A DNA stretch of 64,000 nucleotides, from contig NC_134480.1 in the NCBI RefSeq assembly GCF_964194025.1, forward strand, positions 33,418,001 through 33,482,000, in the 5' to 3' direction. The notes below the pieces were generated by a model. The model saw nothing but the letters and a program-made list of their open reading frames with translations, did not search any database and had not been told where the DNA came from. Of this stretch, positions 1,002-50,203 are shown in pieces. The first letter of the stretch is position 1; every line of letters starts with the position of its first letter. Made by a program: the position numbers and the translations under genes. The stretch is from Convolutriloba macropyga (Eukaryota).

Positions 1002-1010
1002 CCACTGTAT

Positions 1011-1979: not shown

Positions 1980-2077
1980 TATTTGAATTCGAAAGTCACT
2001 TGCGATGCGCGTTAGCTTATTTTTTCCAAAGTATTATTCTCGGAACAAGATCTGAACTTAATTTGCTTTCGCTTACT

Positions 2078-2371
2078 TGCGGTGCGAGATACAAAGAGAG
2101 AGGAGCAGCTGATTTTGAATTAAGAAACTGAAAGTATAAACTGAAGTGCTTGTAAGCAACTGAAGAAGGTGTGATCAGACATGTCTGATCACGCAGCGGG
2201 AAATCAAGAAAGGATGAAAATGAATAAATTGAGACAACGAAAGAACGAACATGAAATGATAATGAAGGGCAAATAAATTGAACTAAATTAATTAAATCAT
2301 ATGAAATTTTACTGCATATTTAAATCATATGAAATAAATAAATGAGATGTAAAATATCCACGGGTATCACA
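2078..2371 (-). repeat. Putative 5' LTR of the Gypsy element
   Basis: The minus strand reads TGTGATACCC...CCGCA just upstream of gag. The partner LTR is outside the window, so the limits are tentative. Confidence 0.4.
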
Positions 2372-3104
2372 ACGCCGAAAATCAATTCAACTTCTTTTTT
2401 CCGTATTTTTTCTATCGAGTGATATTAAATTGACGCAGATGTGTTCCCAGTGTACCAATTTGCAATTGGTTTTATTCAGTAACATTCAGCTGATGTCAAA
2501 TTTTCATGTTAGTTACACTACTAGCAATCCTAGTCATTTTTAGGTTTTTGGCTCTATTTTTTGTTATTTCTCTAAAATCGTTACTGAGTATCTTCGAGAA
2601 TGTTCTCATTGGTTGGCAATGAGGAATAATTGCACCTAATGTTTTGAGCTCTTTCGTAGCGTTTATCGTGACTTTGACACTATTTGTTCTCAAAAAATTA
2701 GAATGATTTTGGAATTTTTCCAGTGTCTGTCCTACTTTTTGTTATCTTATCATTTTATCTTATCGAGGGCATGTCACATACGTTGCTGAAAAGGACCTTA
2801 TTAAATTGACTGATTTATTTTTATTGAAAACTAAGTAAGATCGATTAATTGTTTATAAGATATCTTATCGAATTTTTGAATTTTTGGTGTTCTTATTGTT
2901 CAATTTGTTGTCTAATCGCTCAATCTCGTTGGAGACGAGTGTCCTCAATTGCTATGGACGTCTCTTTCAGTTGTTTAAGTTAATAGCTATAGCATTTTTG
3001 ACAGATTTTATTGGTTTTTAAAGATGAATTAGTGACTAAAATTAGTCGCTGTTGTTTATAGCGTTCGTTTTTTTTACTTTGAGATTGTTTTCCAAAAATT
3101 AAAG

Positions 3105-11100: not shown

Positions 11101-11575
11101 AGCAATCTAATTGTAAAGTGTAACTAGTTCAAAGAATATAACTATAATATTATAACCTCTTTAAACCAATGTGCTTTTAACATGTTCATTTCTTTAGATC
11201 CTAACTTCACTTTATTTTATTTTCGCTAGAATTCGACAACATTCAACAACTTTTTTCTTTCTCTTTTACTTATTTTTTCACACTTGAGATAAAAAGTGAC
11301 TCTTAAATGACAACTTCAATAGTATGTGATCGATATCAAACAAAATCCCTTTCTGATTAATATTAAATCAACAAATCTTTTAATTCTCACAAATTTTATC
11401 AAGCTGTCAACTTTTATCTGACAAAGTTAAAAAACAAGTTTGATTTTTCTTCTTTCTTAACAGCAGTTCTTCTCAAAATCAATTCAACTTCTTGTAAAAG
11501 TTTATTGTAAGACGATTTAGTTTACAAAAGTTAGAAGCGAAGTTAGCCTAAAAAACTGCTATTTAGCCGCAAAAA

Positions 11576-12289
11576 ATGGAATTTTGTTTATATTTGACAA
11601 AAACATCCCTTTTTACAGTTATTATTTTGCAGTTTTTAAGTTCACTTTCATTAGCTTTTCCAATCGAACCACCAAAATACAATGAAACATTGGAACAGGA
11701 AGAAATGAATGCAAAACGAGTCGAGCTTGAGGAAAAATTTGGCTTCAGTTTCCAAAATTTACCGGACGAATGTATAATGTGGCTAACGTGTGAACTTCCC
11801 CAACGAACCGATTACGTCAGAAGGAAAATAAACGACCTGCCGTCTTGTCCATGCTCGTATCCAATCACGGCGATTGTTGACCCCGAACACGAGCTGCACG
11901 ACTCGGCACGAAACCAGTCGTTCAAATGGCGCGAAGCAGCTGACGTCATTGAAAATTACGGGCGAGATAGTTATGGGGTCGGGAAATGTGTTCGTTCATT
12001 TGCCTGGTACTCGGACCCGAGAAATTTGGGCTCTCGAGTTTGTTGTTACGACAGCAGTTTAAATTTGATTACACGTGGGGGCGCAGCGGGGGGTTATGAA
12101 CTCGTGTCGCCGGATCGGAACGCCGAGTATCACGAAATGCTGGATTATATGCCGTATGTTATTTGTAAAATGGATTGGCGTGCAGTGCAAACACAAATTA
12201 CCCCAAATAATGAACAGAAATGCGCCGAAAATCCGGATGATGAAACTTACAAAGCGCAAGTGAAAAAATTGGAAGAATCATTTTCATGA
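11576..12289 (+). CDS. Secreted AMOP-domain protein, isthmin-like (no TSP1 repeat), single coding exon
   Basis: Hydrophobic signal peptide. AMOP motifs LPSCPCSYP, CVRS, CCYDSSLNLITRG and LVSP. The C-terminus D.MPYVICK.DW...PNN.QKC.ENPDDE.Y..Q resembles isthmin. GC is higher than in the flanks and the 237-aa ORF is intact. Confidence 0.9.
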   Translation: MEFCLYLTKTSLFTVIILQFLSSLSLAFPIEPPKYNETLEQEEMNAKRVELEEKFGFSFQNLPDECIMWLTCELPQRTDYVRRKINDLPSCPCSYPITAIVDPEHELHDSARNQSFKWREAADVIENYGRDSYGVGKCVRSFAWYSDPRNLGSRVCCYDSSLNLITRGGAAGGYELVSPDRNAEYHEMLDYMPYVICKMDWRAVQTQITPNNEQKCAENPDDETYKAQVKKLEESFS

Positions 12290-13485
12290 AATGAACGATT
12301 GCCAAATTAAACTTAATTGAACTTTTAATTTGAATTAGAATTTGCAGAATTTCAATTTCCATTTTATCGTAGAGCTCTATTTTTGTAATGGAATATAATT
12401 GCAATGTTTTATTTTCATTTCTTTTTTGACAAAAAATGTGATGCAATATTTTAGCGCAGTGACCTAATTTCCAAGTTTCGCTTCAAATAGAACTGCGTTA
12501 GAACAAAATCTGATGAAATGTTTGGCCTATGATTATAATGACCCGAAATATATTTTTAAAACAAGCAAAAAATATCGTTGAAACTTGTGGCAAAGGAACT
12601 CATCTCCCGAGGAACAACAGAATTCTAGTTTGAAAAAACTTGATAAATGTTTTTCACAAATTGGTAAAAATTTGAGCGAGCATTGATTTTTTTCTATTTT
12701 AATGTATTTATTTATCAATTTAAAAAACAGTGATTCAAAATAGTGACAAAAATTCGTTTTAAATGGATGGTAGAATGGTAGACGTGATTACTGAACAATG
12801 AAATAAGTTTTCAGTAACACCAATGTTGAAAATTTGTTTAAAAAAATGTAGTGTATCTTTTAATTTTTCGTTTTTATTTACAATGAGCTATACTGAAAAT
12901 ACTTTAGATAGATGGTTTTTTTAAATTAAAAACAGTCCTTCTGAAAATTTTTAGAGCGATCTGAAGAACAACTCAAGTTCCGCAGGCACAGTTCTAATCT
13001 GTGTTAAATTGTTTTGGACCAACTAAAAAATTGAAATCCCAAAACATTAGACGAACTCCGATGGGACAAAAAATACTTCTTTAACAAAAAATTTTAAAGA
13101 AAAAAGTGCAATTTTAAAGACCGATTAACTCAAAGATCATATTCTCTTATGAGTTCAGTCCATCGAAGAGAGCTCTTGGTTCAAAAGAGAAACCTCCATA
13201 TCAGTTTTGCCCCAAAATACCGCATTAACGTATTTGAAAACCTGATTTCTTAAAAAAAATTTTTAAGAATTTTTTCAATGGTTCATTCTGTACAAATTGA
13301 ATTTGAATAGGTTGGTAAGGTTTAAAAAGGTCATTAAAAGGCCTCCAGTAACTTCCAGCGTATGATATAAAATGTTTTTTTTTGCAATTTTTTCCCCTTA
13401 AATGAGAGTTTTCTGTGATCCCTTTCATTTTGAATTATTATTAGGTAGCAAGTACCAAAGAATCGACTGTCAAATTCAACAAAAA

Positions 13486-13632
13486 CTTGCAAGAGTTCGT
13501 CGCTTATCTGGCAAAAATCTTACAAGATCGAAGCTTATCTTGCAAGATTCTTGCATATCCGACGGCTATCTGGCAAGATCTTGCAAGTGATGCATAATCT
13601 TACAAGACTTGAAGGGTTCTGGCAAGATAGCC
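13486..13632. repeat. Cluster of palindromic TCTTGCAAGA-like motifs, probably a non-autonomous DNA transposon remnant
   Basis: About 9 variants of TCTTGCAAGA / TCTGGCAAGA / TCTTACAAGA in ~150 bp. Confidence 0.55.
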
Positions 13633-15333
13633 TTCGATAATAGACTATGGAAACTAGTGTTTGATCTAAGGTATCATCTGAAAAGTAATTAATGACTTAA
13701 AAAATGTAAGTTGTTTATAATTCTGTTGATAATTGATGCAGATTTTGATGCTTCAAAAACAGTTAATTTTACAGGAAATAAAACACAAGATGTAAAAATT
13801 TCAGAACTATTGTTGAATAATGTTCTTGTCATGAACTTTCCGATTCAAATTCTTCTTCAAAATACTTTGTTTGAGATAAAAAGTTCTGCGCAATTAATAC
13901 GACAGGAGAAAAATATAGTTTGAAATTGGAATCGAATGGTTTTTATTAATAAAAACTGCCCGAGTTCTTTACAGAACTAAGTAATATGCAAACAAAGTAA
14001 TCAGGTAAAAAACAATATTTGAAACTTTGCTGAAGTGATAACTGTTTTAAAAACACAGTATGCCACATTTGTTGAACGCACTTTTGATACCCCAATTGTT
14101 TGTTATAAAGTCGTCCGCCACAATTTTTTAGGAAGCGAGTGGGGCCAGAAAAGATAACTATTCACCGTTTGGCGTGACTCAACCGCCAGTATATAACCAA
14201 TTTGGTAAGAAAACTTGAATCGCGGTGCCTTTGAAACACGTAAATTGGTGAAAATTTTTATGGATACAAACAAGCCACAGTTGGAAGAATCTGTTTAACA
14301 AATCTCAAACCTTAGTTAAACTGTCGAAAAATTTAACTAAAGAAAACATAATTCTTGTTTTTGTATGTTCAAAGATAACGGTGGTGCCATAAATATTAAT
14401 AATATGGCTCAGACAATACTATACTTCTCGTTAGTTTTTTTTGAGGAATTAATGAGCTCTTTTTTAACGAGTTTTAAAAAACAAAGGTACAGCTTTGAAA
14501 AACAAAATTTTTCCTGCAACGGTTTTTTGCCGAGTATAGCATTGCCGAGCAAGAGGGACTCAAAACTACTTTTTCCATTTGTGACGTAAAAAGAATCTGT
14601 GTTTGTATTTGGCAAAACAGAGCTCTGATACCACTGTTTGCCGTATAACTTATTAAAAAAAGAATAACGGACGAAACTTTCAAGTAACAATTTCTAGCAA
14701 GTCGTCCCTTTGATTTTTACCTCTGAAATGATCGTAATTCAAAAAAAAATCTGCAATTGTACTATATACATTTCATCAAAATAATTAAGCAACTATATTT
14801 TTTTCAGATACAATTAAATACAATCAACAAGAGTTGCGTTAAGAACAATCAAAAGTGAGATTAATTTGATTAATAAGGAATATGTGAATTATTATTTGAG
14901 AAAATGCAATGCGGTTCTTATTTTGTACTGCTAGATTGAACTAATACTTTTTGAAATACTCATCATAATAATCTTTTCGGACTAAAATTGTGTAGTAAAT
15001 TGCGGATTACTTGAAAATAGGCCAAATGTTTATGAAAAAAAAAACTATTAAATCTTGATCAATCCTCAAAAATTGCAAATTTACAAAAAACACAGCTTGT
15101 GCTTGGAATGTATCATTTTAGCAGAAATGAACTCGAAAAAAAAATTAAATATATATTCTTCCTCCTTTAATGTATTTTTAGAACAAACTTGTTTGCAGGA
15201 TATAAGTCGTGGTAACGATATCGCTTCTATTGTTCAACTAATTACTTTAGAGTAAAGTTTGTTTGCATGACAAAACTAAGACGCTTATAAAACAAATAAA
15301 AATTAGTGACAAAATTTTTGGCACCAAATAAAG

Positions 15334-15559: not shown

Positions 15560-16414
15560 AACACACTTGGACACGCAGACACGCATGACACACCACANNN
15601 NNNNNNNNNNNNNNNNNNNNNNNNNNNNNNNNNNNNNNNNNNNNNNNNNNNNNNNNNNNNNNNNNNNNNNNNNNNNNNNNNNNNNNNNNNNNNNNNNNNN
15701 NNNNNNNNNNNNNNNNNNNNNNNNNNNNNNNNNNNNNNNNNNNNNNNNNNNNNNNNNNNNNNNNNNNNNNNNNNNNNNNNNNNNNNNNNNNNNNNNNNNN
15801 NNNNNNNNNNNNNNNNNNNNNNNNNNNNNNNNNNNNNNNNNNNNNNNNNNNNNNNNNNNNNNNNNNNNNNNNNNNNNNNNNNNNNNNNNNNNNNNNNNNN
15901 NNNNNNNNNNNNNNNNNNNNNNNNNNNNNNNNNNNNNNNNNNNNNNNNNNNNNNNNNNNNNNNNNNNNNNNNNNNNNNNNNNNNNNNNNNNNNNNNNNNN
16001 NNNNNNNNNNNCACACACACGCACTCACAGACACAAACACACACACATAGACGCACACACATGCACACACGCACACGCGCGCTCACATATACACACAGGC
16101 ACACACACAGAAACACAAACACACACAAACACAGCACACACACCATNNNNNNNNNNNNNNNNNNNNNNNNNNNNNNNNNNNNNNNNNNNNNNNNNNNNNN
16201 NNNNNNNNNNNNNNNNNNNNNNNNNNNNNNNNNNNNNNNNNNNNNNNNNNNNNNNNNNNNNNNNNNNNNNNNNNNNNNNNNNNNNNNNNNNNNNNNNNNN
16301 NNNNNNNNNNNNNNNNNNNNNNNNNNNNNNNNNNNNNNNNNNNNNNNNNNNNNNNNNNNNNNNNNNNNNNNNNNNNNNNNNNNNNNNNNNNNNNNNNNNN
16401 NNNNNNNNNNNNNN
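15560..16414. repeat. Degenerate (CA)n microsatellite with N-runs at 15598-16011 and 16147-16414
   Basis: CA-rich sequence is visible between and before the N-runs. Confidence 0.9.
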
Positions 16415-20129: not shown

Positions 20130-20860
20130 TTGAAAAAATGGTCTTAGCAACTGAATGCTCATCGGCTTTGATTTCCTAATTACTTGAAGGAAACTAATCA
20201 TGGTATATATAGTTTTAAAGCCCGTTTCAAGTGCAATCTAATGAGCTATGTTTCGTTTTGATTGGTACAGTATTTCAGAAGTTATTAACGATTTTTGACC
20301 CCAAACCTCCGGAAATGACCACATGCTCACAGCTCGAGCTTTAATTTTTTTTTAATCAGAGTGTTTATGTTAATAAACGGTTAATATGAGTTGCCATATC
20401 ATCGCACCAAACTTTTAAGACTATGGCGAATGCTTTTGATGCACCCTTCGGGAAACTATAACCGAACGAGCGTTTGGTACCATTTGAAAAAAGAGCTTAG
20501 TGGCTGAATGCTCATCGGCTTCGATTTCCTAAGTACTTTAAGGAAACTAGTTATGCTATATATAGTTTTCAAGCCCGTTTCAAGTGCAATCTAATGAGCT
20601 ATGTCTCGTTTTGATTGGTACAGTATTTCAGAAGTTATTAACGATTTTCGACCCCAAACCTCCGGAAATGACCACATGCTCACAGCTCGATCTTTATTTT
20701 TTTTTTAATCAGAGTGTTTATGTAAAAAATCGATTAATATGAGTTATAATATCATCGTATCAAACTTTTAAGACTATGATGAACGTTTTTGGTGTGCTCT
20801 TCGGGAAACTATAAACGAATGAGCGTTTGGTACCAATTGAAAAAAGGGCATAGTGAAAAG
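20130..20860. repeat. ~353-bp tandem repeat, about 2 further copies of the 17185-17920 family
   Basis: Same unit motifs (CTGAATGCTCATCGGCTT.GATTTCCTAA, AATCTAATGAGCTATG). Confidence 0.85.
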
Positions 20861-22606
20861 GGCAAATTCTTTCATGGGGTCAAAAAGTTGTTCAAATTGA
20901 GCCAAACTTGGCATAGAGTATCCCATGTGTATGTGGAGTGTACCACAAAAAGAACTTTTGCTATAACTTGCCTAGGAAAAAAGTTAGTATTTCATACGGA
21001 AATTTGCGAATTTCGCGAATAACGAATTTTAAAAATAGGTCTTTTTTATCGGGTCAAGGAGTTGTCCAAAGTGAACCAAACTGATATCCCAAACTCCCAA
21101 TACCATCTAAATTGTAATGCGAAAAGAATGGTCCGCCTAACGTTCCGTGAAAAAAAGTTCGTATTTCAATCGGAAATATCGACTTATTCGCTCATTATTC
21201 GCTTATTCTATTTTCAAAAATATAGAAACTTTATTGGATCAAGGAACTGTTCAAATCAGACCAAACTTGGTATGGAGTATCACCAGTGCAGTTAGAGTAT
21301 AAAACGAAAAGAATTTTTGGTATAGCTTGCGTAGGAAAAAAGTTAGCTTTTCATACGGAAATTTCCAATTATTTCGAATAACCTGCAATTATTGAATTTT
21401 AAAAATAGGTCTTTCCATGGGGTCAAGGAGTTGTCCAAATCAAACCAAACTCCGTATGGAGTATCCCCTGTGTGCCTAGAGTCTAAAACAAAAAGAGTTT
21501 TTGGTATAGCTTGCGTACGAAAAAAATTAGTTTTTCATACGGAAATTTGCGATTATTTCCATGGAAATAATCGCAAACTTCCGTATGGAAACCCAACTTT
21601 TTTCCTAGGCAAGCTGTACCAAAAATTCTTTTTGTTTTACAATCTAGGTACTCACGGTATACTCCATACCCAGTTTGGTTTGATTTGGACTACTCCTTGA
21701 CTCCATGAAAAAGACCTATTTTTAAAATTCAATAATTGCAAATTATTCGAAATAGTTGGAAATTTCCGTATGATAAGCTAATTTTTTTCCTACACCAGCT
21801 ATACCAATAATTTTTTTCGTTTTATACTCTAACTGCACTGGTGATACTCCATACTAAGATTGGTCTGATTTGAACAACTCCTTGACCCAATAAAGTTTCT
21901 ATATTTTTGAAAATAGAATAAGCGAATAATGAGCGAATAAGTCGATATTTCCGATTGAAATACGGACTTTTTTCCAAGAACGTAAGGCAGACCATTCTTT
22001 TTGCATTACAATTTAGATAGTACTGGGTGTTTGGGATATCAGTTTGGTTCACTTTGGACAACTCCTTGACCCGATGAAAAAGACCTATTTTTAAAATTCG
22101 TTATTCGCGAAATTCGCGAATTTCCGTATGAAAAACTAACTTTTTTCCTAGGCAAGCTATAGCAAAAATTCTTTTTGTGTTACACTCCACATTTGCAGGG
22201 GATACTCTATGTCAAGTTTGGATCAATTTGAACAACTTTTTGACCCCATGAAAGAATTTGCCATTTTCACTATTCCCTTTTTTCAATTGGTACCAAACGC
22301 TCATTCGGTTATAGTTTCCCGAAGAGCAAACCAAAATCGTTCATCATGGTCTTAGAAGTTTGATACGATGATATTGTAACTCATAATAATCGGTTTTTAA
22401 CATAAACACTCTGATAAAAAAATTAAAGATCGAGCTGTGAGCATGTGGTCATTTCCGGACGTTTGGGGTCGAAAATCGTTAATAACTTCTGAAATACTGT
22501 ACCAATCAAAACGAGACATAGCTAATTAGATTGCACTTGAAACGGACTTTAAAACTATATATACCATGATTAGTTTCCTTCAAGTACTTAGGAAATCAAA
22601 GCCGAT
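20514..22606. repeat. ~2.1-kb spacerless inverted repeat centred at 21561/21562
   Basis: Centre GCGATTATTTCCA|TGGAAATAATCGC. The arms can be followed out to ATCGGCT (20514) and its complement ending at 22606. Confidence 0.9.
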
Positions 22607-22920
22607 TTCAAACGCATTTGAAACGGAACTTTTTGAACTTGGCGAATAACGAATTTTAAGTATAGTTCTTTTTGATTGAGTCATAGAGTTATCGAAATCA
22701 AACTAAACTTGTCATGGAGTATCACCTGTGTAGGTAGAGTGTAGGAAGAGAAGAATTTTTTCTTTAGATTGTCTAGGAAAAAAATTAGTTTTCCATACGG
22801 AAACTTGCAAATTTCGCGATCAGCGAATTTTAAAAATAGGTCTTTTTCATCGGGCCAAAGAGTTGTCCAAAGTGAACCAAATTAATATCACAAAATCCCA
22901 GTACTATCTAAATTGTAAAG
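20860..22920. repeat. ~175-bp satellite family, left cluster (both orientations)
   Basis: Unit GGGTCAAGGAGTTGTCCAAA...CCAAACT...AGCTTGCCTAGGAAAAAAGTTAG...CATACGGAAATTTGCGA; same family as 35960-38870. Confidence 0.85.
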
Positions 22921-23130: not shown

Positions 23131-23799
23131 ATGAACCCAAAAAGAATTGGCGAACCCTTTGCTAGTAACCCTGATGTTGCGCAACGAAAGAGGTTTAAAG
23201 AAACTTTCTCGGCTCAGCAGTTACAAGGGCGTATCAAGAAAGAGACCGTCAGGGGGAAGAGTAGAGAGTTCCTTTACACAAATTTTGTAAATGAAGTTGC
23301 CGTCGAAACTGCACTAGTTGGCGATTCAATCGTGGACAACATTTGCTTAAATGGTTGTTCCACCTTCTCGTTATCAGGAGGCGTTGTGAATGACTTCTAC
23401 GACCTGCTACCGACCATGAAGTCTTACGGGAAGATAATTCTTTCCTTAGGTGGTAACAATCTCTCGAGATATAACGGACCTGGAGAAGAGCCAGAGTCAG
23501 TATTGGCACAAATAAAGGATCTGGTGGATGCCTTCGCTAAACTTGAAAATCAGCCAAGAGTTGTCGTGTGCACAGTATTACGGAGAACAAGAGCCAATCA
23601 TTCTTACATTAAGACTTTCAATGATATACTAGTAAATTCAGAGCTGTCAGTTTTCAATTTGCATCGACAAGTCTACAAGAACAGAAATTTCCTGGAAGAT
23701 GGGATTCATCTGACTTTACGAGGGAGGAAAACCTACGCTTGTGGCATGAAAAAATTGCGAAAAGAAAAGTTTGGTGACGACGATAGCTTCCGCAATTGA
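23131..23799 (+). CDS. SGNH/GDSL hydrolase-fold protein (LINE ORF1 esterase / OSK-like)
   Basis: All four blocks in order: LVGDS, SGG, LSLGGNN, DGIHL. Intact 222-aa ORF. Confidence 0.85.
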   Translation: MNPKRIGEPFASNPDVAQRKRFKETFSAQQLQGRIKKETVRGKSREFLYTNFVNEVAVETALVGDSIVDNICLNGCSTFSLSGGVVNDFYDLLPTMKSYGKIILSLGGNNLSRYNGPGEEPESVLAQIKDLVDAFAKLENQPRVVVCTVLRRTRANHSYIKTFNDILVNSELSVFNLHRQVYKNRNFLEDGIHLTLRGRKTYACGMKKLRKEKFGDDDSFRN

Positions 23800-24029
23800 T
23801 TGATACAGTTTTTGATTTTGGGCAAAGTCTTATTTGTTTTGATTCTCATTGATCTTAGAGCTATCATGACTTGTTTTGATGTATTTTTTGATGTTTTAAT
23901 TTGATGTATATTGTTACAGAAGCCTGCTCAAAATCATTTTTGACTTTCAATTTGATAATTTGTCATGTTTTGTTTATTGAATTATTTCAGAATTTAATCT
24001 GATTTTAACAGTTCGCTTTTACAATTCTC

Positions 24030-25010
24030 ATCTGTTGAATCCCTTAAATAACTGCCAGGAGAGTTTGTTGCTTTCCTGTGCAGTTAAACTTTAGAACTTT
24101 CAGCAAATAGAATCTTCAACTTTATTGTAATTTTTGATGTTTTTAAAAGTGCTAAGAGATTGTGTTGCTTTCCGGCACAATTAAATGTAGTTACTGATGT
24201 TTTTAAAAGTGCTAGGAGAGTGTTGCATTCCGTCAGTTGAATCTCTCAAATAACTGCCTGGAGAATGTGTTGCTTTCCCGTGCAGTTAAACGTTAAAACC
24301 TTCAGCAAATAGAATCTTCAACTTTATTGTAATTTTTGATGTTTTTTAAAAGTGCTAAGAGAGTGTGTTGCTTTCCGGCACAATTAAATGTAGTTACTGA
24401 TGTTTTTAAAAATGCTAGGACAGTGTGTTGCATTCCGTCTGTTGAGTTCCTCAAATAACTGCCTGGAGAGTGTATTGCTTTCCTGTGCATTTGAATTTTA
24501 GAACTTTCAGCAAATGGAATCTTCAGTTTTATTGTAATTTTTGATGTTTTTAAAAGTGCTAAGAGAGTGTGTTGCTTTCCGGCACAATTACATGTAATTA
24601 CTGATGTTTTTAAAAGAGCTAGGAGAGTGTGTTGCATTCCGTCAGTTGAATCTCTCAAATAACTGCCTGGAGAGTGTGTTGCTTTCCGGTGCAGTTAAAC
24701 GTTAGAACCTTCAGCAAATAGAATCCTCAGTTTTATTGTAATCTTTGATGTTTTTAAAAGTGCTAAGAGAGTGTGTTGCTTTCCGGCACAATTAAATGTA
24801 GTTACTGATGTTTTTAAAATTGCTAGGACAGTGTGTTGCATTCCGTCAGTTGAGTTCCTCAAATAACTGCCTGGAGAGTGTGTTGCTTTCCTGTGCAGTT
24901 AAATTTCAGAACCTTCAGCAAATGGAATCTTCAGCTTTATTGTAAATTTTGTTTTTTTATAAGTGCTAAGAGAGTGTGTTGCTTTCCAGCACAACTAAAT
25001 GTAGTTACTG
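24030..25010. repeat. ~204-bp tandem repeat, about 4.8 copies, with 3 GTGTTGC(T/A)TTCC motifs per unit
   Basis: ACTGCC anchor at 24051, 24253, 24458, 24662 and 24866. Confidence 0.9.
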
Positions 25011-25103
25011 ATTGATGATGTGTTAAATTTTTTGCTCTTAAAAAGTTCTAAATAAGTTCCTTAGAGTATTATGTCTAGCCAAGTTTTCTGGCTTTTCATT
25101 TCA

Positions 25104-26563
25104 ATGAACAATGACGATGTTCAACTTCTCTCAGAAAGTTCCAAGCTTTGNNNNNNNNNNNNNNNNNNNNNNNNNNNNNNNNNNNNNNNNNNNNNNNNNN
25201 NNNNNNNNNNNNNNNNNNNNNNNNNNNNNNNNNNNNNNNNNNNNNNNNNNNNNNNNNNNNNNNNNNNNNNNNNNNNNNNNNNNNNNNNNNNNNNNNNNNN
25301 NNNNNNNNNNNNNNNNNNNNNNNNNNNNNNNNNNNNNNNNNNNNNNNNNNTGCATGTATTTTTCTTCAAAAAGTGTTTCGCGTTTTTAGTTGAAATGACT
25401 GTTGTCGTTTCTCTTTCGATATACACAAACATAACACACTTTCTTGCGGGTTATTAAAAATTTTAGGATCAAGAAACATTTAATATAACTATGGCAATAA
25501 AATTGTGGTTTGATTTAGTGTTGTGAAGACCACCAAAAGCTTACAGAGGCTCTTCTTCAGAATGAGGAAAAAGTGCGTCAAATGGGATTGATTCTAGAGG
25601 ACATGGGCAACGAGTATGCATCAAAAATTATGGAAATGAAGCAAAAGATCTCCAGTATTGTAAGTTTAACCCTTGTTCAGGATATTGCTAGCAACATTTT
25701 ATAACTCCACAACTACGCCGGAGTTTTTTACTTGAAAATTTTGCAAATTTTTCGTGTTTATTTTTTGAGGGATGTTTTTTCCAGCAAAACGCTAACATTT
25801 TTGTCACTGATTTGGATCAGTACTAAAGGTTCTTTTGTGTTGAGTTTTTCAATGCCCTTACCAACACTTTTTCGTCATTTCCCAAGACTTTTTTAATTAA
25901 TAGGTGAGCAAGACAATTAAGGATTTGGAACCAGAAAGACTCGCCCTGTCCGAAGATACAATTCTTGAGGACAATGTCGAAAATTTCCAGGAGATTGAAG
26001 AGACACCAGAAGTGCAATATGGTCTTGATAACAGGAATTTAGATCATATATATAAAGGACATAATCCTGCCCACTATGGTTTGCATTTGAGAAGGTGGAT
26101 TTTTGGAGAAAATGGGTTGTCAACTGACATGATTACTCCTCAACGCACAATGGCATCGGGACGAGCCGCAGCAGACTCCGAACTCGTTCTGAAGTTCTTT
26201 AGTAATTTTTAGTCACTTCAATTTTAGCCATATGCCAAATAAAAGTAAACGGTTTAACCGAAATTCTTGTTTATAAGAAAAAACTTCGAGGGCTTTTTTG
26301 AGATTAAGTTTTCGCAAAAAAGTAAAGATTCTTATTTTTGGTGCTCAACCGTATTTATGTCCCTTTTTGCTTTAGGATCAGTTCAAAGAAAATTTCCCAG
26401 AAGAAAGCAACCCCTGGCTGCGAAAAAGGCTAGAGCAGCTGCAAATAAGGCGGGACTAAACGTCAAAGACCGATTGGCAGGAACAGGGAAATACAGTGCT
26501 GGAGCGAAGGAAATCAGAAAAGCTCAACTTAAGAAAAAGCATGAGTCAATTCAATCAGAATAG
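25104..26563 (+). CDS. Spliced coiled-coil + BEN-like domain protein A (exons: 25104-gap, 25519-25659, 25904-26201, 26376-26563)
   Basis: GT-AG introns with compatible phases give ...HYGLHLRRWIFGENGLSTDMI...ADSELVLKFF/RSVQRKFP...AKKARAAANKAG, clearly paralogous to protein B. The first exon runs into the 200-N gap, so the start is uncertain. Confidence 0.65.
25151..25350. other. Assembly gap (exactly 200 N)
   Basis: N-run of round length, probably a scaffold join. Confidence 0.9.
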
Positions 26564-26869
26564 TTTGTTCTGCTATTTGTTCAATTGTCGAATTCTTTGT
26601 CTTAAAGTTTGCATTCTTAAAAGTTTACATAAATTTTCCTGTCAGATATAATTAGTTTTGCAAAAAAAAGGTTCGCCCAAGGCTTTTTTGAGTCTTGTTT
26701 TGCTTGATAATTTCTCGCTCGATTTTGTTAGTTCTTCTGACTTTATTCTATAAGATGTGTTGTTTGTAGAGAATTAAATTTTTTTCGAGTGTCCAATTTT
26801 TCTTTGCAGATTTATTAAGAGAATAAGAAGAGATTTAAATTTCTTGTCTTTGTTGCCGTAGGTTTGAGC

Positions 26870-27440
26870 ATCAGCAATTTTTTTTATAAAAAAAGAGTGA
26901 GGCTTATAATAGGGAAAGCAATACTGAATTCTAAAGTTATGATTTAAAGAAATGATAACAATGCTAAATATGTGATTTGCCTTCCGAAAGAATTCGTAAA
27001 TTTTATAATAAGTGCTTTTCTTCATAAATATCTTTTTGGCTTGGGTAAGTGTAAAGCTAAGTTTCTAAATTCCGAAATGGTTAGGAGGGCGTGTTGCCTT
27101 CCGATTTATTAGAAGAGAGTGAGGCACATAATAGGGAAAGCAAAAGCTTAGCAAGAGCCCAAAGTCTTTATTGAATTTCAAAGCTTTTTTAAAGAAATCT
27201 TAACAATGCTAAATATGTGATTTGCCTTCCAAACGAAATCGTAATTTTTATAATTTTAAGTGCTTTTCTACATAAATATCTTTTTGGCTCGGGTAAGTGT
27301 AAAGCTAAGTTTCCAAATTCTGAAATGGTTAGGAGGGCGTGTTGCCTTCCGACTGATATAAATTTTCGATTTCTTGTTAGAATTAACTCGAGGCTTGATC
27401 GGAATTTTTTTGATGGTGCTATTTGGGTGTGTTGCCTTCT
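26870..27440. repeat. ~245-bp direct duplication carrying GGAGGGCGTGTTGCCTTCC motifs
   Basis: ~26945-27105 matches ~27190-27352; a third motif copy lies at ~27426. Confidence 0.8.
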
Positions 27441-27568
27441 AGCACTTTGCGTTGATTTCAATCTATTTCTCGCTGCGGTTGCTACAACGTGAGCGTTGTT
27501 CTTGAAAACGTTTGCGAGTGAAATGAACAGTTTTTGTAAAATAAACTCTGCTCTTCAGTGATTGAAAA

Positions 27569-29384
27569 ATGGCAACTCGAACGTCTAGTAAGGGCAGGAA
27601 GATAGTGAAGCCCACAAACTTCAGCACTGACAGTGAAGTTGAGTTGCAGGAAACAGCCCAAAGTCAAATGCGAGACAGCAGATTTCTGTTTTATTATGGC
27701 AAAAATGCGTTCTCAACTGCCCTGAATTCATCGAGCTGGCCACAGGGGACTTCCTGGAAATATAAATTAAGTCTGGAGCTAGGTCAAACATATCCAATGA
27801 TTCACAATGAAACTCAACCAGAATGCATCTATCTCGGAAAAGGTTCACAATCTGAAATATCACGTCATAAACTTGTTGTTTTGGCTCAATTGAAAAAAGG
27901 AGAACCTCCAAGCTTCGTTCCGGAGACAATTCTTCGTGACAACAGAGATGAGGAGGTCATTTCAGAAGATTGCGAAACTCCTCTTCATTCCCCTCTTACG
28001 CAGCATGTGTCCCAGGCTGCGGGGTCAACATCTCTGATAGTTAACTATAAGGCAACGAAGACTGCCGAAATAGAGAGCGCCAAAAATAAAAGTTCGTCAT
28101 GTGAGCAGTTTCAACTTTTTTTTGCGGAAAATCAATCAAGGATGGCACGGGCCGAATCCAGTTTCGAGAAAATTAAGAAGCAATCAGATCGCCGCAAGAG
28201 GAAGCTGGTGAACGAGTTCAATGATTCGGTAGTATCTGTTTGCAGTTTTTTGAAATTAATGTCTAGACAAAATAAAAATCTAAGGCAGTCGCTGCTTCGT
28301 TGCTTGAAAAATTGAACAAGAAAAAATGGCCGGCAAAATTGCACAAAATCTTTCATGTTTCAACTTCTGAAGCTAGGTTTCTAATGAAAATTGTATTAAA
28401 ATATTTTGGTTACAAAATTCTACAATTTTGCTTCTTTTTTGACTCTACGTCTTTTTTAGACAATACGTATTTATGACACTAAAGACGTTCTGTAAATTCA
28501 GTAAAAAAGACTATTTTCTTGGTTGTTTTCTAGCGCTCTGAATTTCATATCAAAATGATACTAACATTTAAAAGCGTTTTGTTTAGCTGGAGGAGTTAGA
28601 GGAGTGCGTGAGAATCCAAAAGTTTGGGTTTGAGAGTGTCGATCAAAATCCGCATCTTCTTGAAACGTTCCCCGGTGTCCGTGTTATGAAAGGAGATGTT
28701 GATTTGATGCAAATTGAAGCCAATGAATTTCCTAGCAGGCTAGGACGAGCCCTTCGCAAGGAAATTTTTAGACAAAATGGACTCGTTGAAACAATGATTG
28801 GCGCTGAGCATTCAACTAGAAAAGAGGCAAAGGGCTCTGATGTTAAGCGGTTTTTTGGTTAGATTTTTAAGAGCAACAATTATGATCAACATTAGGGTTT
28901 TGTTAACGGGTTTTGTATTTTAAATATAACGTTTGTTTTTTAAATATATAAAGTCTTAATAAATTAGATAATGGAAAGAAAGATGAGTGACAATCAACAT
29001 ATGCTCTAAAAATCTCCTGCCACTACTGGAGGAAAAGATAAATGTTTATTGTTTTGCTTAGGGTATTAAACGTTTCATAAACTAACCAACTTTGTCATGT
29101 TTATCTTTTGTAAGGTTCTTCAAATTCTTAGATTAGAGCAAATATAGTAATTGTTTAAATAGGCGCTGTGCTGATAAAGGTATAGAGTTGTCGACATTCT
29201 TTAAAATGCTTTAGAAGTTATCAACGGTAAGTATCCGCTTACTCCCCGATTGGCATTCAAACTGGCAAAGGATGCAGCCAATCAAGCGGGAAGAGAAGTG
29301 AAAAGCTATCGATCACAACTTGTTCATGAAGAGAGAAACAGCACAGAAAATGAAATAGACAACAGAGGAGAACCTATCAATTGA
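27569..29384 (+). CDS. Spliced coiled-coil + BEN-like domain protein B (exons 27569-28228, 28587-28857, 29215-29384)
   Basis: Phase-0 intron with a TACTAAC branch site (28559-65), then a phase-1 intron. The product SRLGRALRKEIFRQNGLVETMIG...DVKRFF/EVINGKYP..DW..KLAKDAANQAGR fits the BEN helical pattern (L...lF....L....G ... V...fP...W......N.k.R). Confidence 0.7.
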
Positions 29385-29744
29385 AAATGTGCCATACTAC
29401 TGAGTTAGCAAATAGAAAAAAACAAACAGGTGCTCATGTCAAGCAGCAATGATTCTAAATAGTTTTAGAATTTTATAGTGAATTCTTTCACCCCCCCCTT
29501 CTTATTAAAGCTATGTTAGTTTTGATTACAACCCGTTTTGGTTTAGTAGCGATTGTTAACTGCTTGTTAAACAATAGTTTGAAAAATCAGTTCATCTTAA
29601 ATTGCCACTGCATCTCTTGTGCCGCTAAATTTAATCGATACTATTGAATCGAACTGAACACAATGTTTGATAACGCTCAAAAATAAAGTTTTGAAACAAC
29701 TTTTTCCTATTGCATTGTGATTTTTTGTTAAATTAGTGCGCTGC

Positions 29745-31230
29745 TATGAGGGTGTAATTCTCCCTGATACCAATGAGATATGTTACTGCTTTGCTCTGAC
29801 AGTTATGTTGCTAAGAAATATGAAATTGATATTCGGTTGTGTTGCCATCAAGAACAAATCAATGAAAAAGGTCTAGGTGAAGATTTAATAGCAATATTTT
29901 TTACGTGGAGTTTGCGCAGTGCTCCGAGGGTGTGTTGCTCTCTGGTACTAATGAGATAATTTAAAGGTGACCGCTTACAAGCAGCATAGGTTTTGTTTAA
30001 AATAGTGAGAAGGCTATGAGGGCGTGTTGCCTCGAGCAGAAATAAACGAGAAACTATTAGGTGAAGATTTAAAGGCGGGTGATTAAGTGTGATTTTTTTC
30101 CTGTGCTACGAGGGCGTGTTGCCTTCTGGTACTAAGGAGAAATGTCGCAGGTTTGTGCAGAGACAGTGTGTAATATTGAAAAATTCGGGATGCTATGATG
30201 ATGTTGCCTTCTAGAGAAAGTAAATGAAAACTTCTAGCTGAAGAAATAATAGCGAGGTGCTTTTGTAAAATTTGTGCAGTGCTACCAGTATCTGTTTGCC
30301 TCTTGCACCAATGCGATTTTTTACTGGTTTTGCGCTAACAGTCAGAGTTTGTTGTGTTTGAGTGCCATGAGGGTGTGTTGCTCTCTGGTACTAAAGAGAG
30401 AATTTAAATGTGACCACTTAAAGGGAGCATAAGTCTTGTTTAGAATAGTGAGAAGGCTGTGAGGGCGTGTTGCCTCGCAGAAATAAACGAGAAATTATTA
30501 GATGAAGATTTAAAAGCGCGTGATTGATTGTGATTTTATCCTTTGCTACGAGGGCGTGTTGCCTTCTGGTACTAAGGAGAAATGTCGCAGGTTTGTGCAG
30601 AGACAGTGTGTAATATTGAAAAATTCGGGATGCTATGATGATGTTGCCTTCTAGAGAAAGTAAATGAAAACTTCTAGCTGAAGAAATAATAGCAAGGTGC
30701 TTTTGTAAAATTTGTGCAGTGCTACCAGTATCTGTTTGCCTCTTGCACCAATGCGATTTTTTACTGGTTTTGCGCTAACAGTCAGAGTTTGTTGTGTTTG
30801 AGTGCCATGAGGGTGTGTTGCTCTCTGGTACTAAAGAGAGATTTTAAATGTGACCGCTTAAAGGGAGCATAAGTCTTGTTTAGAATAGTGAGAAGGCTGC
30901 GAGGGCGTGTTGCCTCGCAGAAATAAACGAGAAACTATTAGGTGAAGATTTAAAGGCGCGTGATTTATTGTGATTTTATCCTTTGCTACGAGGGCGTGTT
31001 GCCTTCTGGCTGGTACTAAGGAGAAATATCGCAGGTTTGTGCAAAGAGACAGTGTTATTTTGAAAAAAATTTGAGTTGCTCTGAGGATGTTGCCTTCTAG
31101 AGAAAGTAATTGAATTTTCCTTGGTGAAGAGTTAAAAGCTAGGTGCTTTGGTAAAATTTGTGCAGTGCTACGAATATCTGTTCCCCTCTTGTACCAATGA
31201 GAGTTTTTTTACTGGTTTTGCGCTTCACCA
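29745..31230. repeat. ~440-bp tandem repeat, about 3.3 copies, rich in GAGGG(C/T)GTGTTGC
   Basis: GCTACGAGGGCGTGTTGCCTTCTGG at 30105, 30545 and 30985. The array ends just before the SET-transposase ATG. Confidence 0.9.
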
Positions 31231-31252
31231 AAAGTTTAGGTTCCAGTTAGCA

Positions 31253-34206
31253 ATGAGTGAGTGCGAAAACCTAGCGCAAATCGAAGGACAACTGTCTGAA
31301 AAATTGTTGAAAGATTTCCCGAATTCACCAAAACTTTTGACTGTGCTATGGAGTAAGGATGATTTTGAATTAAAACTGCGCAATGACCGAAAGCTGAAAA
31401 AACTGTTTATGGATATGAGCGAATCATACAAAGCTGCTATGGATTTTGGACTGAGTATTGAACCAGACAAATACGGAGGATTTTGCTTGGTGAATCGGTC
31501 GATGAGCGCCATCAAGCCTGGTGAAATTGAGGTGGCCGTTGGATTGTTAGCTAACCTGCCAAAAGAAAACTCGTATAAAGACTGGTCAGTTATGGAAGGA
31601 GGAAAACTCCTAGTTGGAGTGGCTAGGTGGGCTAATCATTCCTGTAAAGCTAATTGCGACTACTACATGAAAGGTGGTTATCGTGGACGACAATGTGTTA
31701 GGTTGAGAGCGCTGAAGCAAATAGAAGACAATGAAGAGCTGACAACCTTCTACAACGAAGACGCTTTTGGAGAAGAAAATGTCGATTGTCTTTGCAGTCA
31801 TACAGAAGAGCATGGAAGGAGTGCAAATTTAGTGCAATCAACTTCACAAACTGTAGTGAGAGCTGTAAAACGAAAACGTCTACCAAAAGCAGAAATTCGA
31901 TATGCACAACAAGCAACAGAGTTTGATTCTTTCTTTGCTTATTACGAAGACTCATCGAATTTTAGCCTGTCCTCATTAAATGAAGCGCCCTCTTTTCCTA
32001 TAGAAACTTCCCCAAACAATACTGCGGTTCCTCAAATCATCACATCAGATTCTATTGACGACGAAATGGGCAGCAGTAATGGAACAACTGACGAGTCATT
32101 GAACAACGCTCAATTTCAATTTTTCCCCGAGTATGAAAGCGATGAAAGTTCACAGTCTGACACCGAAGCTGTAAGGGAACTTGCCTCATTCAATCGATCT
32201 TCTCTATGTGATTTTGTGAGTGACTGCAGACCAGTCTCTGTGTCAAATCTAGCTTTTTCCATCATGTCGTTAGTAATAAAGCATAATTGTTCTGACCAAA
32301 TGATGTACGAACTTCTAAAACGCGATCAAATTATTTTAAATGGTGAAAGTTTAGCACCATGGACAATACAAAAGAAGTTGGGTGAATTTGCCGCTCAATA
32401 TCAATGTAGAAAAGAACTTTTGTCGAACGGTGAACAAATTTATCTCAATTTCAGTCCGCTTCTTCTGAAAATTGTTCAAAATTCGATCAACGGCATGTTG
32501 AGATACGCAGAGTTGAGAAAAACAACAAACGATATAATTATGCCTAAACTGGAAGTTATTGAACGGCAAGTGACAATTAGGTTAATTTTGAACTTGGACG
32601 GAGCCCTGGTCTCAAAATCTCCTCCTAAAACAGCCTGGCCGCTCCTGATAGCGATTGCCGATCTACCTCCGAAAAAACGACAGATGTTTCAAAACATAAT
32701 TTTAGGATCTCTTTTTGTTGGAAACGGGACACCGAATTTTGACGACGTTTTTGATCATTTCGAGCGACAGATATCTACACATGAGGAGGTAACACTGGAT
32801 GGTGATCGAGTTAAGGTTAAGTTCGAGCCAATCTTTTTTGTAGCAGATTTAATTGGCAAAGCAAAAGTATTGAATATCAAACAATGCAACGGATATTATG
32901 GTTGCTCTCTCTGCACTCAGCGTGGCTTCCACATGGATGGAGCGCATCACTATCCACATGACTTTGATGTTCATAAAAATATGCGGTCTCCTGAAAGTTA
33001 TCTGGAGAACTTGAAGAACCTGGATGAGGGATCTCAACAAAAACTCAAAACCCTCAACGGTAAAAAGAGTGATTTTGAAAAATTCACTCAAGGAGTAAAG
33101 GGCAGGAGCAAAATTTTTTCTGTTATCGCTAATCAGCCGCTCTCTTCGCCGGTTGATACAATGCATCAACTTTTTCTTGGCGTATCGAGGGACCTACTAA
33201 CGTATTTTTACGACCGCATGAAAGCAGACAGTAAAAGAAAATTGAATAAAATACTTTCGGGTATTCAAACTCCAAGAGAAATGAAACGATCAGTGCGATC
33301 TTTCGATCATCTCGCAAATATGAAAGCCAGCGAGCTAAAAGTTTATTTGCTATATCTGGCGTCCATCGTCTTACCCATTTTTTGTTTGGAGAAGACCGGA
33401 GGTCCGATAAAACGGATCTTTTTAAACTAGTTTTTTCTTTGCGCAGTTTATATGATGACAATCGAAACTCTAAATTTTGCAGACTTTTGTTAGACGAGTT
33501 TTGCGTCAGCATGGCTGAAAAAAATCCCAAGAAGTTCGAGTCGATCAATTTCCATCTATTGAGACATCTTGCTTGGCAAGCTGCTGAGATTGGTCCTCTC
33601 TTCGTTACTTCAGCATCAATGTTTGAATCGGCTCTTCACCTTCTGATTGCTCCGTTAACTGGAACAACAAACCACTGTAAACTAATGGTAGAGAGATTCA
33701 TCAGAGGCAAAGTGGTTTCTGAGATAGATTATAGTGAAGATGATTTGGCGCAGTTTCTAAGGTTTTCTGACAATCCGTCGGATGTGAACGAAGAATTTGG
33801 CCTCGTAGAATCAGAAGAATTAAGAGAATTCAGGTTCAACAATCCGTCAGCTCGAGTGTTCTGTCGATTCAGGAAGAATTTTTATTTTGGCTCTTTAGCG
33901 TACGGGCGGGAATCAGGTGCAGATATTTTTGCATGTGTAGACGCGTCAACAATGGCTATTGGGAAAATTCTTTTCTTCTATGAGCTGGATGGTGAATTTT
34001 GTGTGCTTCGTGAACAAAAAATTGTTTCAACATTTAAACTTGTTCAACAACCAGAAGGTCCGGTTTCTTATTTTGCATACGTCGTTGAAGACAAGAATAG
34101 CACAATTCATGTTGCAGTAGATGCATTAGAAATAAAGTTTTTTCCTGTAAAAATTGAGGACAATTTGTATCTTGTTCCACTACTCAGTAACTTTGAGCAT
34201 GATTAA
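31253..34206 (+). CDS. SET domain (Suv4-20/KMT5-like) fused to a CMC-EnSpm/CACTA DDE transposase; ~984 aa if the 1-nt frameshift at 33378-33383 is corrected
   Basis: SET: DWSVM...GVARWANHSC..NC...LRALKQIEDNEELTTFY...FGEENVDCLC. Transposase: LNLDG...AWPL...DLPPKKR..N, FVADL, NGYYGCSLC, DTMHQLFLGV, KASELK, NFHLLRHL...GPL...SASMFES. The two ORFs (to 33430, and 33382-34206) are joined by adding one T to a T6 run. Confidence 0.9.
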
Positions 34207-34542
34207 TTTTTAGTTTTCAGTTTCAATTTTGATTATAGCTACGCTGTTGATTCATTAACGTATGATCTGTTATTGTCATTGTATATTTTGAAAACAATCA
34301 ATTTGCAAAACTCGATATATTGAAAACAATCAATTTGCAAAACAATCGATATTTTGAATAGTAATTTTGCTGCATGACTTTTTAACGTATTGCTTGTTTT
34401 ATTTTATTGACATAAATTTTAAACAATTATTTTGCGAAACTTAGTTGAAAACAAAGTCATCTTGCAGAACGCAGGCAAATTCCAATCTCTTTACATTATT
34501 TTTCTTTTGCTTGTTCTAAAAATTTGCATCCTTCCAGACGTA

Positions 34543-34821
34543 ATGAGGCAAACAATTTTGAGTTTTGAGAACAACCGTTTGATTTATCGAATACAACCTG
34601 CTGACATAGCTGATAATGTCGAATCAAGTGAAGTTGACTTGCTCAGGAGTCAGATCTTTGCTTTGGAGGAAAAGGTTGCTCTCCTTACGAAAAGAGTAGA
34701 AGACCTGGAACGTCTTCGACCTGTTGAGATAATCGATTTGACACAAGATGAAAGTTTCACAACAACTGTTTCGGTGTCGTCTAACCAAAGCGATGATATA
34801 GAGATGAATGGACTTTTTTGA
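34543..34821 (+). CDS. Small coiled-coil protein with a SUMO-interacting-like motif (VEIIDLTQDE)
   Basis: ATG at 34543, heptad leucines LRSQIFALEEKVALLTKRVEDLE, then IIDLT and an acidic/Ser tail. Coding-like composition. Confidence 0.55.
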   Translation: MRQTILSFENNRLIYRIQPADIADNVESSEVDLLRSQIFALEEKVALLTKRVEDLERLRPVEIIDLTQDESFTTTVSVSSNQSDDIEMNGLF

Positions 34822-35264
34822 GCCGGGCAGGATCTTAAGCTTTTAAATAGCACGATAGTTTCTGGTTTTCTCTAGTAAAATGTTCAAGCTGGTTCTTTTA
34901 GATTTTTGAATTGTTCAAATGTAGTTTGTTTTCTACTTAATTGTATTAAAGATTTGATACCCCTGCTTTTTTGATGCTGAATTGAACTTGATTTTTTGCT
35001 TTTCCAACTGGCTAACAATTTATACATATTATAAATCGAGGACAAGCTTGTGTTTTACTAATTTTTCGAGGAGGTTCGGAGGGTGTATTGCCTTCTGCCG
35101 CAAAAGTATCACTTTCATTCCATAATTTTCTATTTTGCTTCAAGCTTTTTTCGTTTATACCTTGACATAGACTGGAGGGTGTGTTGCCTTCCGGCTAATG
35201 TTATGACATTGCTCATAAGTTGTACTTTTTTTCTAATGATCACGAAAATTTTTAGTTTCTCGAA

Positions 35265-35570
35265 ATGAGTTCCCAGCTACTGATCAGCGTACCGGGGACA
35301 TTAGTGATGGGATCTTTTGTAGTACTCAGATTTGTGGTAATTTTCGAGACCGCAGTTTTGACAACGTGGCAGCCAATACAAATGGTTCAAATGATCCTTT
35401 TGAATGACGGAGTTGAGCATACATTATCTTTGACCCCAAATACCCCAGAATTTGAGTCCTTTATGGCATGGGTTACTGAAGTTGAAATGAGCGACGAGCA
35501 GGAGCAAGCTTTGTATCCTCTGATTGCGGTTCTTGGAGACTACTACGGTTCCTCTGATAGCGAACACTGA
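35265..35570 (+). CDS. Hypothetical 101-aa acidic protein
   Basis: ATG-initiated ORF with GC above the flanks, same strand as the other cargo genes, preceded by two copies of the shared motif. No family recognised. Confidence 0.4.
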   Translation: MSSQLLISVPGTLVMGSFVVLRFVVIFETAVLTTWQPIQMVQMILLNDGVEHTLSLTPNTPEFESFMAWVTEVEMSDEQEQALYPLIAVLGDYYGSSDSEH

Positions 35571-35959
35571 CTACTATTTCGATCAGATCTACAGTGCTAA
35601 ATTTTAATTGTTTGCTCATGATAACAAACTTTCTTAGGCTGTGCTTATTTCGAACAATTTTTTTAAAAATGTGCTAAGTTTTTACTCTGTTTTATGTTTG
35701 TGATAAAGGAACTAATTTCTCTCAATTAATGCGCAATTAAAAACTTCGATGTTTTATGTTTATGATAAAGAAACCAATTGAAAGCTTGTCTTCTTTCTTG
35801 TTTTTCATGCATTTAGTGAGTGTGGTTAATATGAGTGTCAGTATTATCCAATAAAACTTTTAGTCTGATGCGAAATATAGGCTGAAAGAATATTAACTCT
35901 AGTTATTAACTCTAGAATTTTAGGCTGAACGAATATTAACTCTAGTTATTAACTCTAGA

Positions 35960-49943: not shown

Positions 49944-50203
49944 ACGGGCTTTTTAATGATACCACTCACAACTCTATACTATGAAAATATCGATCGGTTA
50001 AAATTGTCTGAACAAAAAACCCAGTTGAGTATATAGTTCCTCCTCCAACAAGAGGGGTCGGAACAACAATTTCTGACGCTTGAAAGCAAAATTTCTTAAG
50101 TTGTCTTCCTGGTTTTCGTTAGTTTCTGGAGTATCAGTGTCACTGAAAAATCCAAATGTTTTTTAAAGAAAATTGATAACGACCCATTCAACCTAAAATT
50201 TGG

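Follow-up and report, generated by a model that had tools for sequence, protein, structure and literature searches.

A hairpin-capable motif amplified ahead of the genes of an animal SET-transposase CACTA-type element: a candidate family-private cis signal

To our knowledge, a transposon protein that reads clusters of a motif of its own family has been established only in plants, namely, in the VANDAL/VANC and Spm/TnpA systems. The targets of VANC proteins are specific to the family; they are densely packed, in one orientation, in tandem repeats outside the coding regions of the element, and copies of the element differ in the repeats that they have gained or lost (PMC5735166). TnpA of Spm needs high-density clusters of its motif, and TnpA-like proteins have been reported only from flowering plants (bioRxiv 10.64898/2026.08.24.746577). 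Among animal DNA-binding proteins, those with BEN domains are able to recognize palindromic sites in dimeric form and to cluster at promoters: the Insv site, TTCCAATTGGAA, is bound 2:1, NACC2 has paired sites, and BEND3 clusters at promoters (PMC8887127). Here, we analyze a stretch of 64 kb from Convolutriloba macropyga (NC_134480.1, positions 33,418,001 to 33,482,000; hereafter, the window, to the whole of which all motif counts refer unless stated otherwise) that contains a giant, CACTA-type cut-and-paste transposon with a SET-domain transposase gene. In all four spacers between the five gene units of this element, and hence ahead of four of its five transcription units, we find the same short motif, which can fold into a hairpin and, in part, is multiplied in tandem arrays. 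It appears reasonable, judging from the sequence, to consider this motif a cis signal private to the transposon family.

The five gene units are co-oriented and comprise an SGNH-like open reading frame (ORF), two paralogous spliced genes, the SET/transposase gene followed by a small coiled-coil ORF, and an ORF of 101 amino acids (aa) (Table 1). The initial annotation of this locus had placed the motif before four of the genes, always on the same strand, and this observation is borne out: the word GAGRGYGTGTTGCYTT has 12 exact matches in the window, at the places originally named, all on the plus strand, and none in 100 shuffles. With up to one mismatch allowed, the core of 12 nucleotides (nt) has 27 matches against 0.9 expected, 26 of them on the plus strand between 24061 and 35188, and the heptamer GTGTTGC occurs 27 times on the plus strand and once on the minus strand. 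A position weight matrix of 19 nt, made from the distinct sites and used with a threshold of at least 10 bits, detects 33 sites on the plus strand and one on the minus strand. Of these, 31 fall within 24.0-35.3 kb, compared with 2.25 in shuffles, every one of the 31 on the plus strand and confined to the four spacers; the three outliers are the same word in two retrotransposon copies and a single inverted site at 39106, within the element. This inverted, motif-like site (39106-39124, minus strand, 17 bits) is located between a satellite and the subterminal repeats of the element. Scans of the window with the weight matrix and with a covariance model did not find the motif in coding DNA, in introns, in the satellite, or in the DNA that precedes the first gene or follows the last one. 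Within the window, then, the motif is supported as a cis element that is private to the transposon and confined to its intergenic spacers, and not as background. The original observation is thereby confirmed, and is stronger than it was initially stated to be.

Each spacer presents the motif in its own setting. Array 1 contains 14 sites, and its units combine three kinds of site, namely, A (CTGCC..GGTGCAG), B (GTGCT..GGCAC), and the weak C, whereas the 440-bp unit of array 3 consists of five sub-units of ~90 nt, three of which carry strong sites (F, G, and H) and two of which are decayed. The distance from the last site to the next ATG is 95 nt in spacer 1 (ATG at 25071), 140 nt in spacer 2 (site 27429, ATG at 27569), 257 nt in spacer 3, where a decayed unit lies at 83 nt, and 84 nt in spacer 4 (ATG at 35265), the other site of which is 180 nt from the ATG. 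Neighboring sites are repeatedly spaced by 90-97 nt, which suggests that the arrays probably derive from one ancestral unit of ~92 nt, with only the hairpin part still recognizable. The repeat units had been described as otherwise dissimilar, and in the main they are: between spacers, similarity is limited to at most 50 nt around the motif, the one exception being a two-site block shared by 27315-27446 and 30000-30133 (136 nt, 66%). The arrays are not homologous along their full length, the similarity between spacers being only local, and GTGTGTTGC is the sole word of at least 8 nt common to all four spacers. This confinement of similarity to the surroundings of the motif implies that the module was kept, or seeded, while the DNA around it diverged. 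The polyA-like and TATA-like hexamers that can be found in the spacers occur at the chance frequency for AT-rich DNA.

The layout does not hinge on the assembly gap in the first spliced gene. The ORF that opens at 25071 starts with MSSQVFWLFISMNNDD, and homology links it to the corresponding first exons in L002 and L003, two diverged subfamilies discussed below. Array 1 thus ends 95 nt ahead of a genuine start codon, and up to there the sequence is uninterrupted; the gap itself (25151-25350), within exon 1 of this gene, begins 175 nt past the last motif, and the arrays and their order are therefore independent of it. In the European Nucleotide Archive (ENA) assembly from which further copies of the element were obtained, the contigs of L001, L004-L007, L009, and L010 end inside array 3 or at ~26.0-26.3 kb (window coordinates), near the window gap, and it seems that the stretch from array 1 to the second exon of the first spliced gene is hard to assemble in both assemblies. 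As a separate observation, GC skew reaches its maximum for the window, +0.26, at 30001-32000, a segment that takes in array 3 and the beginning of the transposase gene, and the G-rich sense strand of this segment could favor R-loops if it is transcribed.

Aligned on GTGTT, the sites conform to GGAGRGY-GTGTT-GCYTTCC, a core of ~19 nt that is an imperfect inverted repeat with GTGTT as the loop and that complementary flanks usually lengthen to 30-36 nt. The degenerate R and Y of the motif as first written down turn out to pair with each other, as A-T in array 1 and as G-C elsewhere. The outer flanks differ by site class and are complementary within a site: CTGCC/GGTGCAG, GTGCTA/TGGTAC, GGTGCTA/TAGCACT (the arms of site 27429 in spacer 2), and TTGAT/ATCAA. 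Folding yields, for nearly all sites, a stem-loop whose loop holds GUGUU, and the strong ones reach -12 to -23 kcal/mol, with z of -2.5 to -4.3 relative to dinucleotide shuffles; site A of array 1 stands at -23 kcal/mol and z -4.3, and the second site of spacer 4 (35181) at -19.9 kcal/mol, with a stem of 17 bp. Within the 440-bp repeat, the two sub-units that are decayed fold no better than dinucleotide shuffles. When every left flank is grafted onto every right flank around a common core (11 classes), the cognate combinations average -16.8 kcal/mol and the permuted ones -13.6 kcal/mol (p = 5e-5). Among ten aligned sites of a single class, 87.7% of cells pair, a share that falls to 35-55% once the partner column is shifted; one inner pair has changed on both sides (G:C to A:U, between arrays) and six on one side via G:U. 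The column-shuffle control for these ten sites is not exceeded, as 337 of 500 shuffles pair equally well, and covariation within one site class is, accordingly, not significant alone.

Ten further copies of the family, fetched by exact-protein look-ups from one ENA assembly and showing 84-99.8% DNA identity, retain sites at equivalent places. Array 3 varies among the copies from ~1.5 to more than 4 units, and at one locus, the 248-bp unit that is duplicated in spacer 2 is single-copy. Divergence from the window is 3.1% within the hairpins versus 4.6% outside them, in the non-array parts of spacers 2-4, a modest deficit calculated from counts that are not independent.

More distant relatives present another facet of the story. 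L002 and L003, with transposases 45-47% identical to that of the window, match the window element in gene order and satellite, and in these two subfamilies, k-mer sharing, a simple hairpin scan, and covariance model R1 revealed no GTGTTGC motif, no word common to the spacers, and nothing that fits the model of the site; L003 has only two short blocks common to two spacers. A third SET-transposase family, L012, was reached via an intronless relative of an exon of the spliced genes and comes from the same assembly (1-14812). Its transposase is ~30% identical to that of the window and matches Transposase_21 and DUF1258, SET and transposase are separate, overlapping ORFs, and the element further carries an HTH_psq ORF (4405-4980) and the intronless relative itself (6108-6812). 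L012 has a motif of its own, ATCCRATTGTGGAG, with 6 matches, all on the plus strand, against 0.01 expected. These are distributed over three spacers, one of which has four of them, in an array (168-bp x 4.2), and the other two one each, 132-254 nt before ORF starts, and the arms of the sites are complementary and partly different from site to site (GAAAGCCGAC/GTCTGCTTTC versus GAAGCCAA/TTGGCTTT). By these comparisons, the same architecture arose, or diverged beyond recognition, in two lineages, and this parallel is the strongest argument that the architecture is functional and family-specific. The satellite of L012 has a unit of 180 bp and, by eye, is unlike the 174-bp one of the window (consensus units, not aligned).

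What could such a motif be for? The interpretation that we favor, tentatively and without calling it probable, is that it represents a DNA-level, cis-acting recognition module private to the transposon family. The sites would be bound, as double-stranded DNA, by dimers of a factor that recognizes their sequence and is probably a product of the element; all genes of the element would thereby be linked in expression or in chromatin state, and tandem duplication would multiply the sites. We rank this interpretation first because the layout matches that of the documented VANC21 targets and of the Spm TnpA clusters; that the motif is bound, on DNA rather than RNA, as well as by which protein and with what consequence, is what we infer. 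Quite a few observations sit uneasily with a module of this kind. The first gene unit has no motif site upstream, and given that there are only four independent arrays, the shared orientation alone is weak evidence, expected by chance in about 1 case in 8. L002 and L003 encode the same genes and lack the motif, so the module is not essential to such elements. The outer arms vary and yet stay complementary, which recognition of double-stranded DNA by a protein would not call for, and the most conserved part of the motif is the asymmetric loop together with the 3' arm. The plus strand folds more stably than its complement at 28 of 29 sites, although this bias is suggestive only, because the plus strand is G/T-rich, which favors G.T over A.C appositions; the hand-counted ratio of the two, ~8:1, is weak for the same reason. 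About 15 of 22 stem substitutions in decayed copies break pairs, by hand reading, with no sign of ongoing constraint, a predominance that is to be expected of dead copies. Finally, the tests for BEN domains described below were all negative or low-confidence, and no candidate binder emerged from them.

Several of these points lead directly to a close rival of the double-stranded DNA site, one that fits the covarying arms and the asymmetric loop better, namely, that the motif functions as a hairpin, formed either by RNA or by DNA that is transiently single-stranded. Transcription of the plus-strand genes would then include the sites, as 5' leaders or as an intergenic transcript, and a protein reading the GUGUU loop on its stem would control translation, stability, processing, or export of all messages of the element. 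A constant loop and apical stem combined with variable but complementary basal arms are the usual signature of a structured element, and the better pairing of cognate arms in the permutation, the paired cells of the ten-site alignment with their compensated and G:U changes, the z values of the strong sites, and the greater stability of the plus strand all agree with it, as do the co-orientation of every site with the genes and the like build of the L012 sites. The statistical part of this case is blunted by the column shuffles that pair equally well and by the G/T richness that by itself favors G.T over A.C; a search of Rfam 15 over 23800-35400 found no covariance-model match at E up to 1. The public runs that hold the element look like DNA: their coverage of 30950-35650 is flat and very deep, and spliced joints are absent. 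It would also be unusual for a leader of ~1 kb to contain up to 14 stable hairpins; moreover, the structure is lost in decayed units, and stems are freely broken in decayed copies. On balance, we regard a functional hairpin as possible, if somewhat doubtful.

An explanation without any function can be envisaged as well. A palindrome-prone minisatellite of ~92 nt could have spread by duplication and ectopic conversion, with template-switching during replication keeping the arms complementary. The recurrent 90-97-nt spacing and the block common to spacers 2 and 3 do point to one ancestral repeat, the copy number of the arrays is unstable, L002 and L003 manage without the motif, and the stem substitutions in old copies look neutral. 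This scenario, however, calls for four co-oriented seedings after the split from L002 and L003, never into introns or other non-coding DNA, and for the retention of only ~30-45 nt while the rest diverged beyond alignment. It also leaves aside the unrelated motif of L012, with the same build and placement, and the lower divergence of the hairpins compared with the spacers, and we consider it unlikely. That the sites serve the transposase as binding sites during transposition, in the manner of the En/Spm subterminal repeats, is very improbable: CACTA elements do have clustered motifs bound by element proteins (bioRxiv 10.64898/2026.08.24.746577), and one inverted motif-like site does lie near the 3' end, at 39106-39124, but the spacer sites are internal (24.0-35.2 kb, with the 3' end near 39738) and in one orientation, and the true 3' subterminal region carries 12 copies of ATGAHTCGAA instead, so that the spacer sites are not end-binding sites.

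If the motif is, as we prefer to think, a module recognized on double-stranded DNA, the question of its reader becomes pertinent. The initial annotation had labeled the two paralogous spliced genes as BEN genes and had cast their products as the binders of the motif, a label that found no support in Pfam, in profiles run against the PDB, in a protein atlas, or in comparisons of low-confidence structure models. Specifically, Pfam gave no BEN match, either for the exon pieces (E up to 10) or for ten relatives and the additional, intronless one (E up to 1); profiles of 6 and of 31 sequences matched no chain among PDB sequences; and the protein atlas search provided no lead on these BEN-like genes. 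The first AlphaFold2 model has a predicted local distance difference test (pLDDT) score of 51. The model of the intronless relative, with pLDDT 68, shows two short strands followed by helices and, at this low confidence, has no BEN match by Foldseek (PDB, AFDB Swiss-Prot) or by VIA-align. These predicted structures are too weak to deny a BEN fold. The window motif itself is unlike known BEN sites, with at most GCGTG in common with the BEND3 site. We consider it unlikely that the motif is bound by the two "BEN-like" proteins. The transposase usually contains the DNA-binding domain in Spm-type elements of animals, which makes the transposase and the HTH_psq ORF of L012 equally good candidate readers.

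The remaining features of the element and of its neighborhood are collected in Table 1 or described in this paragraph. The SET/transposase frame is broken near 33.38-33.43 kb in the window copy, where two ORFs, 31148-33430 and 33382-34206, overlap in different frames, and is a single ORF of 1003 aa in copy L005 (5931-8942). Homology with other copies stops near 39738. An inverted copy of this 3' terminus was not found upstream within the window, so that the 5' end is absent, rearranged, or concealed by the gaps at 15598-16414. A near-palindrome (36294-36783) lies at the start of the satellite, its arms of 231 nt being 86% complementary and 28 nt apart; satellite-like units in the opposite orientation, plus more inverted repeats, occupy 20161-22918, and a separate hairpin, GGCCTGG-TTTTT-TGCCAG.., at ~39014, is kept in copies L005 and L006. 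Beside the element, there are two adjacent copies of a Pao/BEL long terminal repeat retrotransposon on the minus strand (43166-48953 and 50096-55685; Peptidase_A17, rve, DUF1759, and DUF5641), with broken frames, and an ORF at 11576-12289 with an AMOP domain (E 4e-8) that is probably an exon of a host gene.

Table 1. Positions of the motif-bearing spacers, gene units, and terminal features of the element in the window
Feature	Position	Strand	Description
Exact matches of GAGRGYGTGTTGCYTT	24359-24985, 27085, 27333, 30110/30550/30990, 35175	+	Degenerate-word search
Array 1	24034..25012	+	204-bp unit x 4.8 (Tandem Repeats Finder)
Spacer 2	26840..27460	+	248-bp duplication; sites 27091, 27339 (kind D), 27429 (kind E)
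Array 3	29835..31224	+	Lone site 29839, then 440-bp unit x 2.9 at 29926-31224 (Tandem Repeats Finder)
Spacer 4	35067..35202	+	Two sites, loops at 35085 and 35181
SGNH/GDSL-like ORF, first unit	23131..23799	+	Lipase_GDSL_2, E 0.0055, below cutoff
"BEN-A" gene (label not confirmed)	25071..26563	+	Exon 1 cut by gap; exons 25904-26212, ~26405-26563
"BEN-B" gene (label not confirmed)	27569..29384	+	Paralogue of "BEN-A"; exons 27569-28315, 28608-28862, ~29250-29384
SET-domain/CACTA-type transposase gene	31253..34206	+	SET, E 1.6e-8
Small coiled-coil ORF	34432..34821	+	Kept in L002 and L003, but located before BEN-A there
Last ORF, 101 aa	35265..35570	+	No homologue in L002 or L003; no motif downstream
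174-bp satellite	36566-38867		Downstream of last gene unit
3' subterminal repeats	39204..39646	+	ATGAHTCGAA 12x, all +, units ~21-43 bp

How does this locus compare with what is known of motif arrays elsewhere? The Su(Hw) array in the 5' leader of gypsy is a transposon-borne array of co-oriented protein sites between the promoter and the genes, but these sites are not hairpins and their reader is a host-encoded zinc-finger protein. The bacterial REP/BIME sequences are intergenic imperfect palindromes with a conserved core, often arrayed, and in this respect resemble the window motif; they differ in being bacterial and in being mobilized by a transposase of their own. BEN sites, too, are palindromic or paired and clustered near promoters (PMC8887127), but they span 6-12 bp, lack covarying flanks, and the window motif resembles none of them; the core of the L012 site at 7241, TCCAATTGTGGA, recalls the Insv palindrome and is a lead only.

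The closest parallels are those with the two plant systems. The VANDAL/VANC-like circuit proposed in the initial annotation fares well with respect to the layout, that is, a motif that is spacer-only, co-oriented, amplified, copy-variable, and family-specific, but not with respect to the BEN identity of the reader. The VANDAL21/VANC21 arrays of Arabidopsis (YAGTATTAY) share with the window element a short, dense motif in one orientation and its location in tandem non-coding repeats, including the upstream regions of genes, as well as the gain and loss of repeats between copies and the existence of related families with other motifs (PMC5735166). They differ in that VANDAL21 is a plant Mutator-like element, the motif of which is an asymmetric word of 9 nt that forms no hairpin, and for which VANC binding and demethylation have been demonstrated (PMC5735166), whereas the window element is an animal one, CACTA-type, with an inverted repeat of 19-36 nt and without a VANC homologue. 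The TnpA clusters of Spm/En belong to the same superfamily, given that a relative of the window transposase matches Transposase_21, and consist of clustered, family-specific motifs; there, an element-encoded regulator reads the motifs, as may also be the case for the window motif. TnpA sites, however, are terminal (bioRxiv 10.64898/2026.08.24.746577), whereas those of the window are internal, a different motif being found in its terminal repeats.

Pushing the analogy further, one can imagine that different lineages of animal CACTA elements with a SET transposase have acquired, each for itself, a private "address label" in the shape of a hairpin, which lies before their transcription units and was multiplied by tandem duplication, and that a protein encoded by the element, be it one of the BEN-like pair, an HTH protein, or the transposase, reads the label and so switches on its own family only, or shields it from silencing. 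We put this forward as a conjecture, and an unlikely one. Should it be true, the "address label" would be the animal counterpart of the VANC and TnpA circuits, and might guide the SET methyltransferase of the element itself. Two distant animal families, each with its own motif and with the same hairpin-capable build and placement before genes, provide a concrete candidate for a self-recognition circuit in animals comparable to those of the plant transposons.

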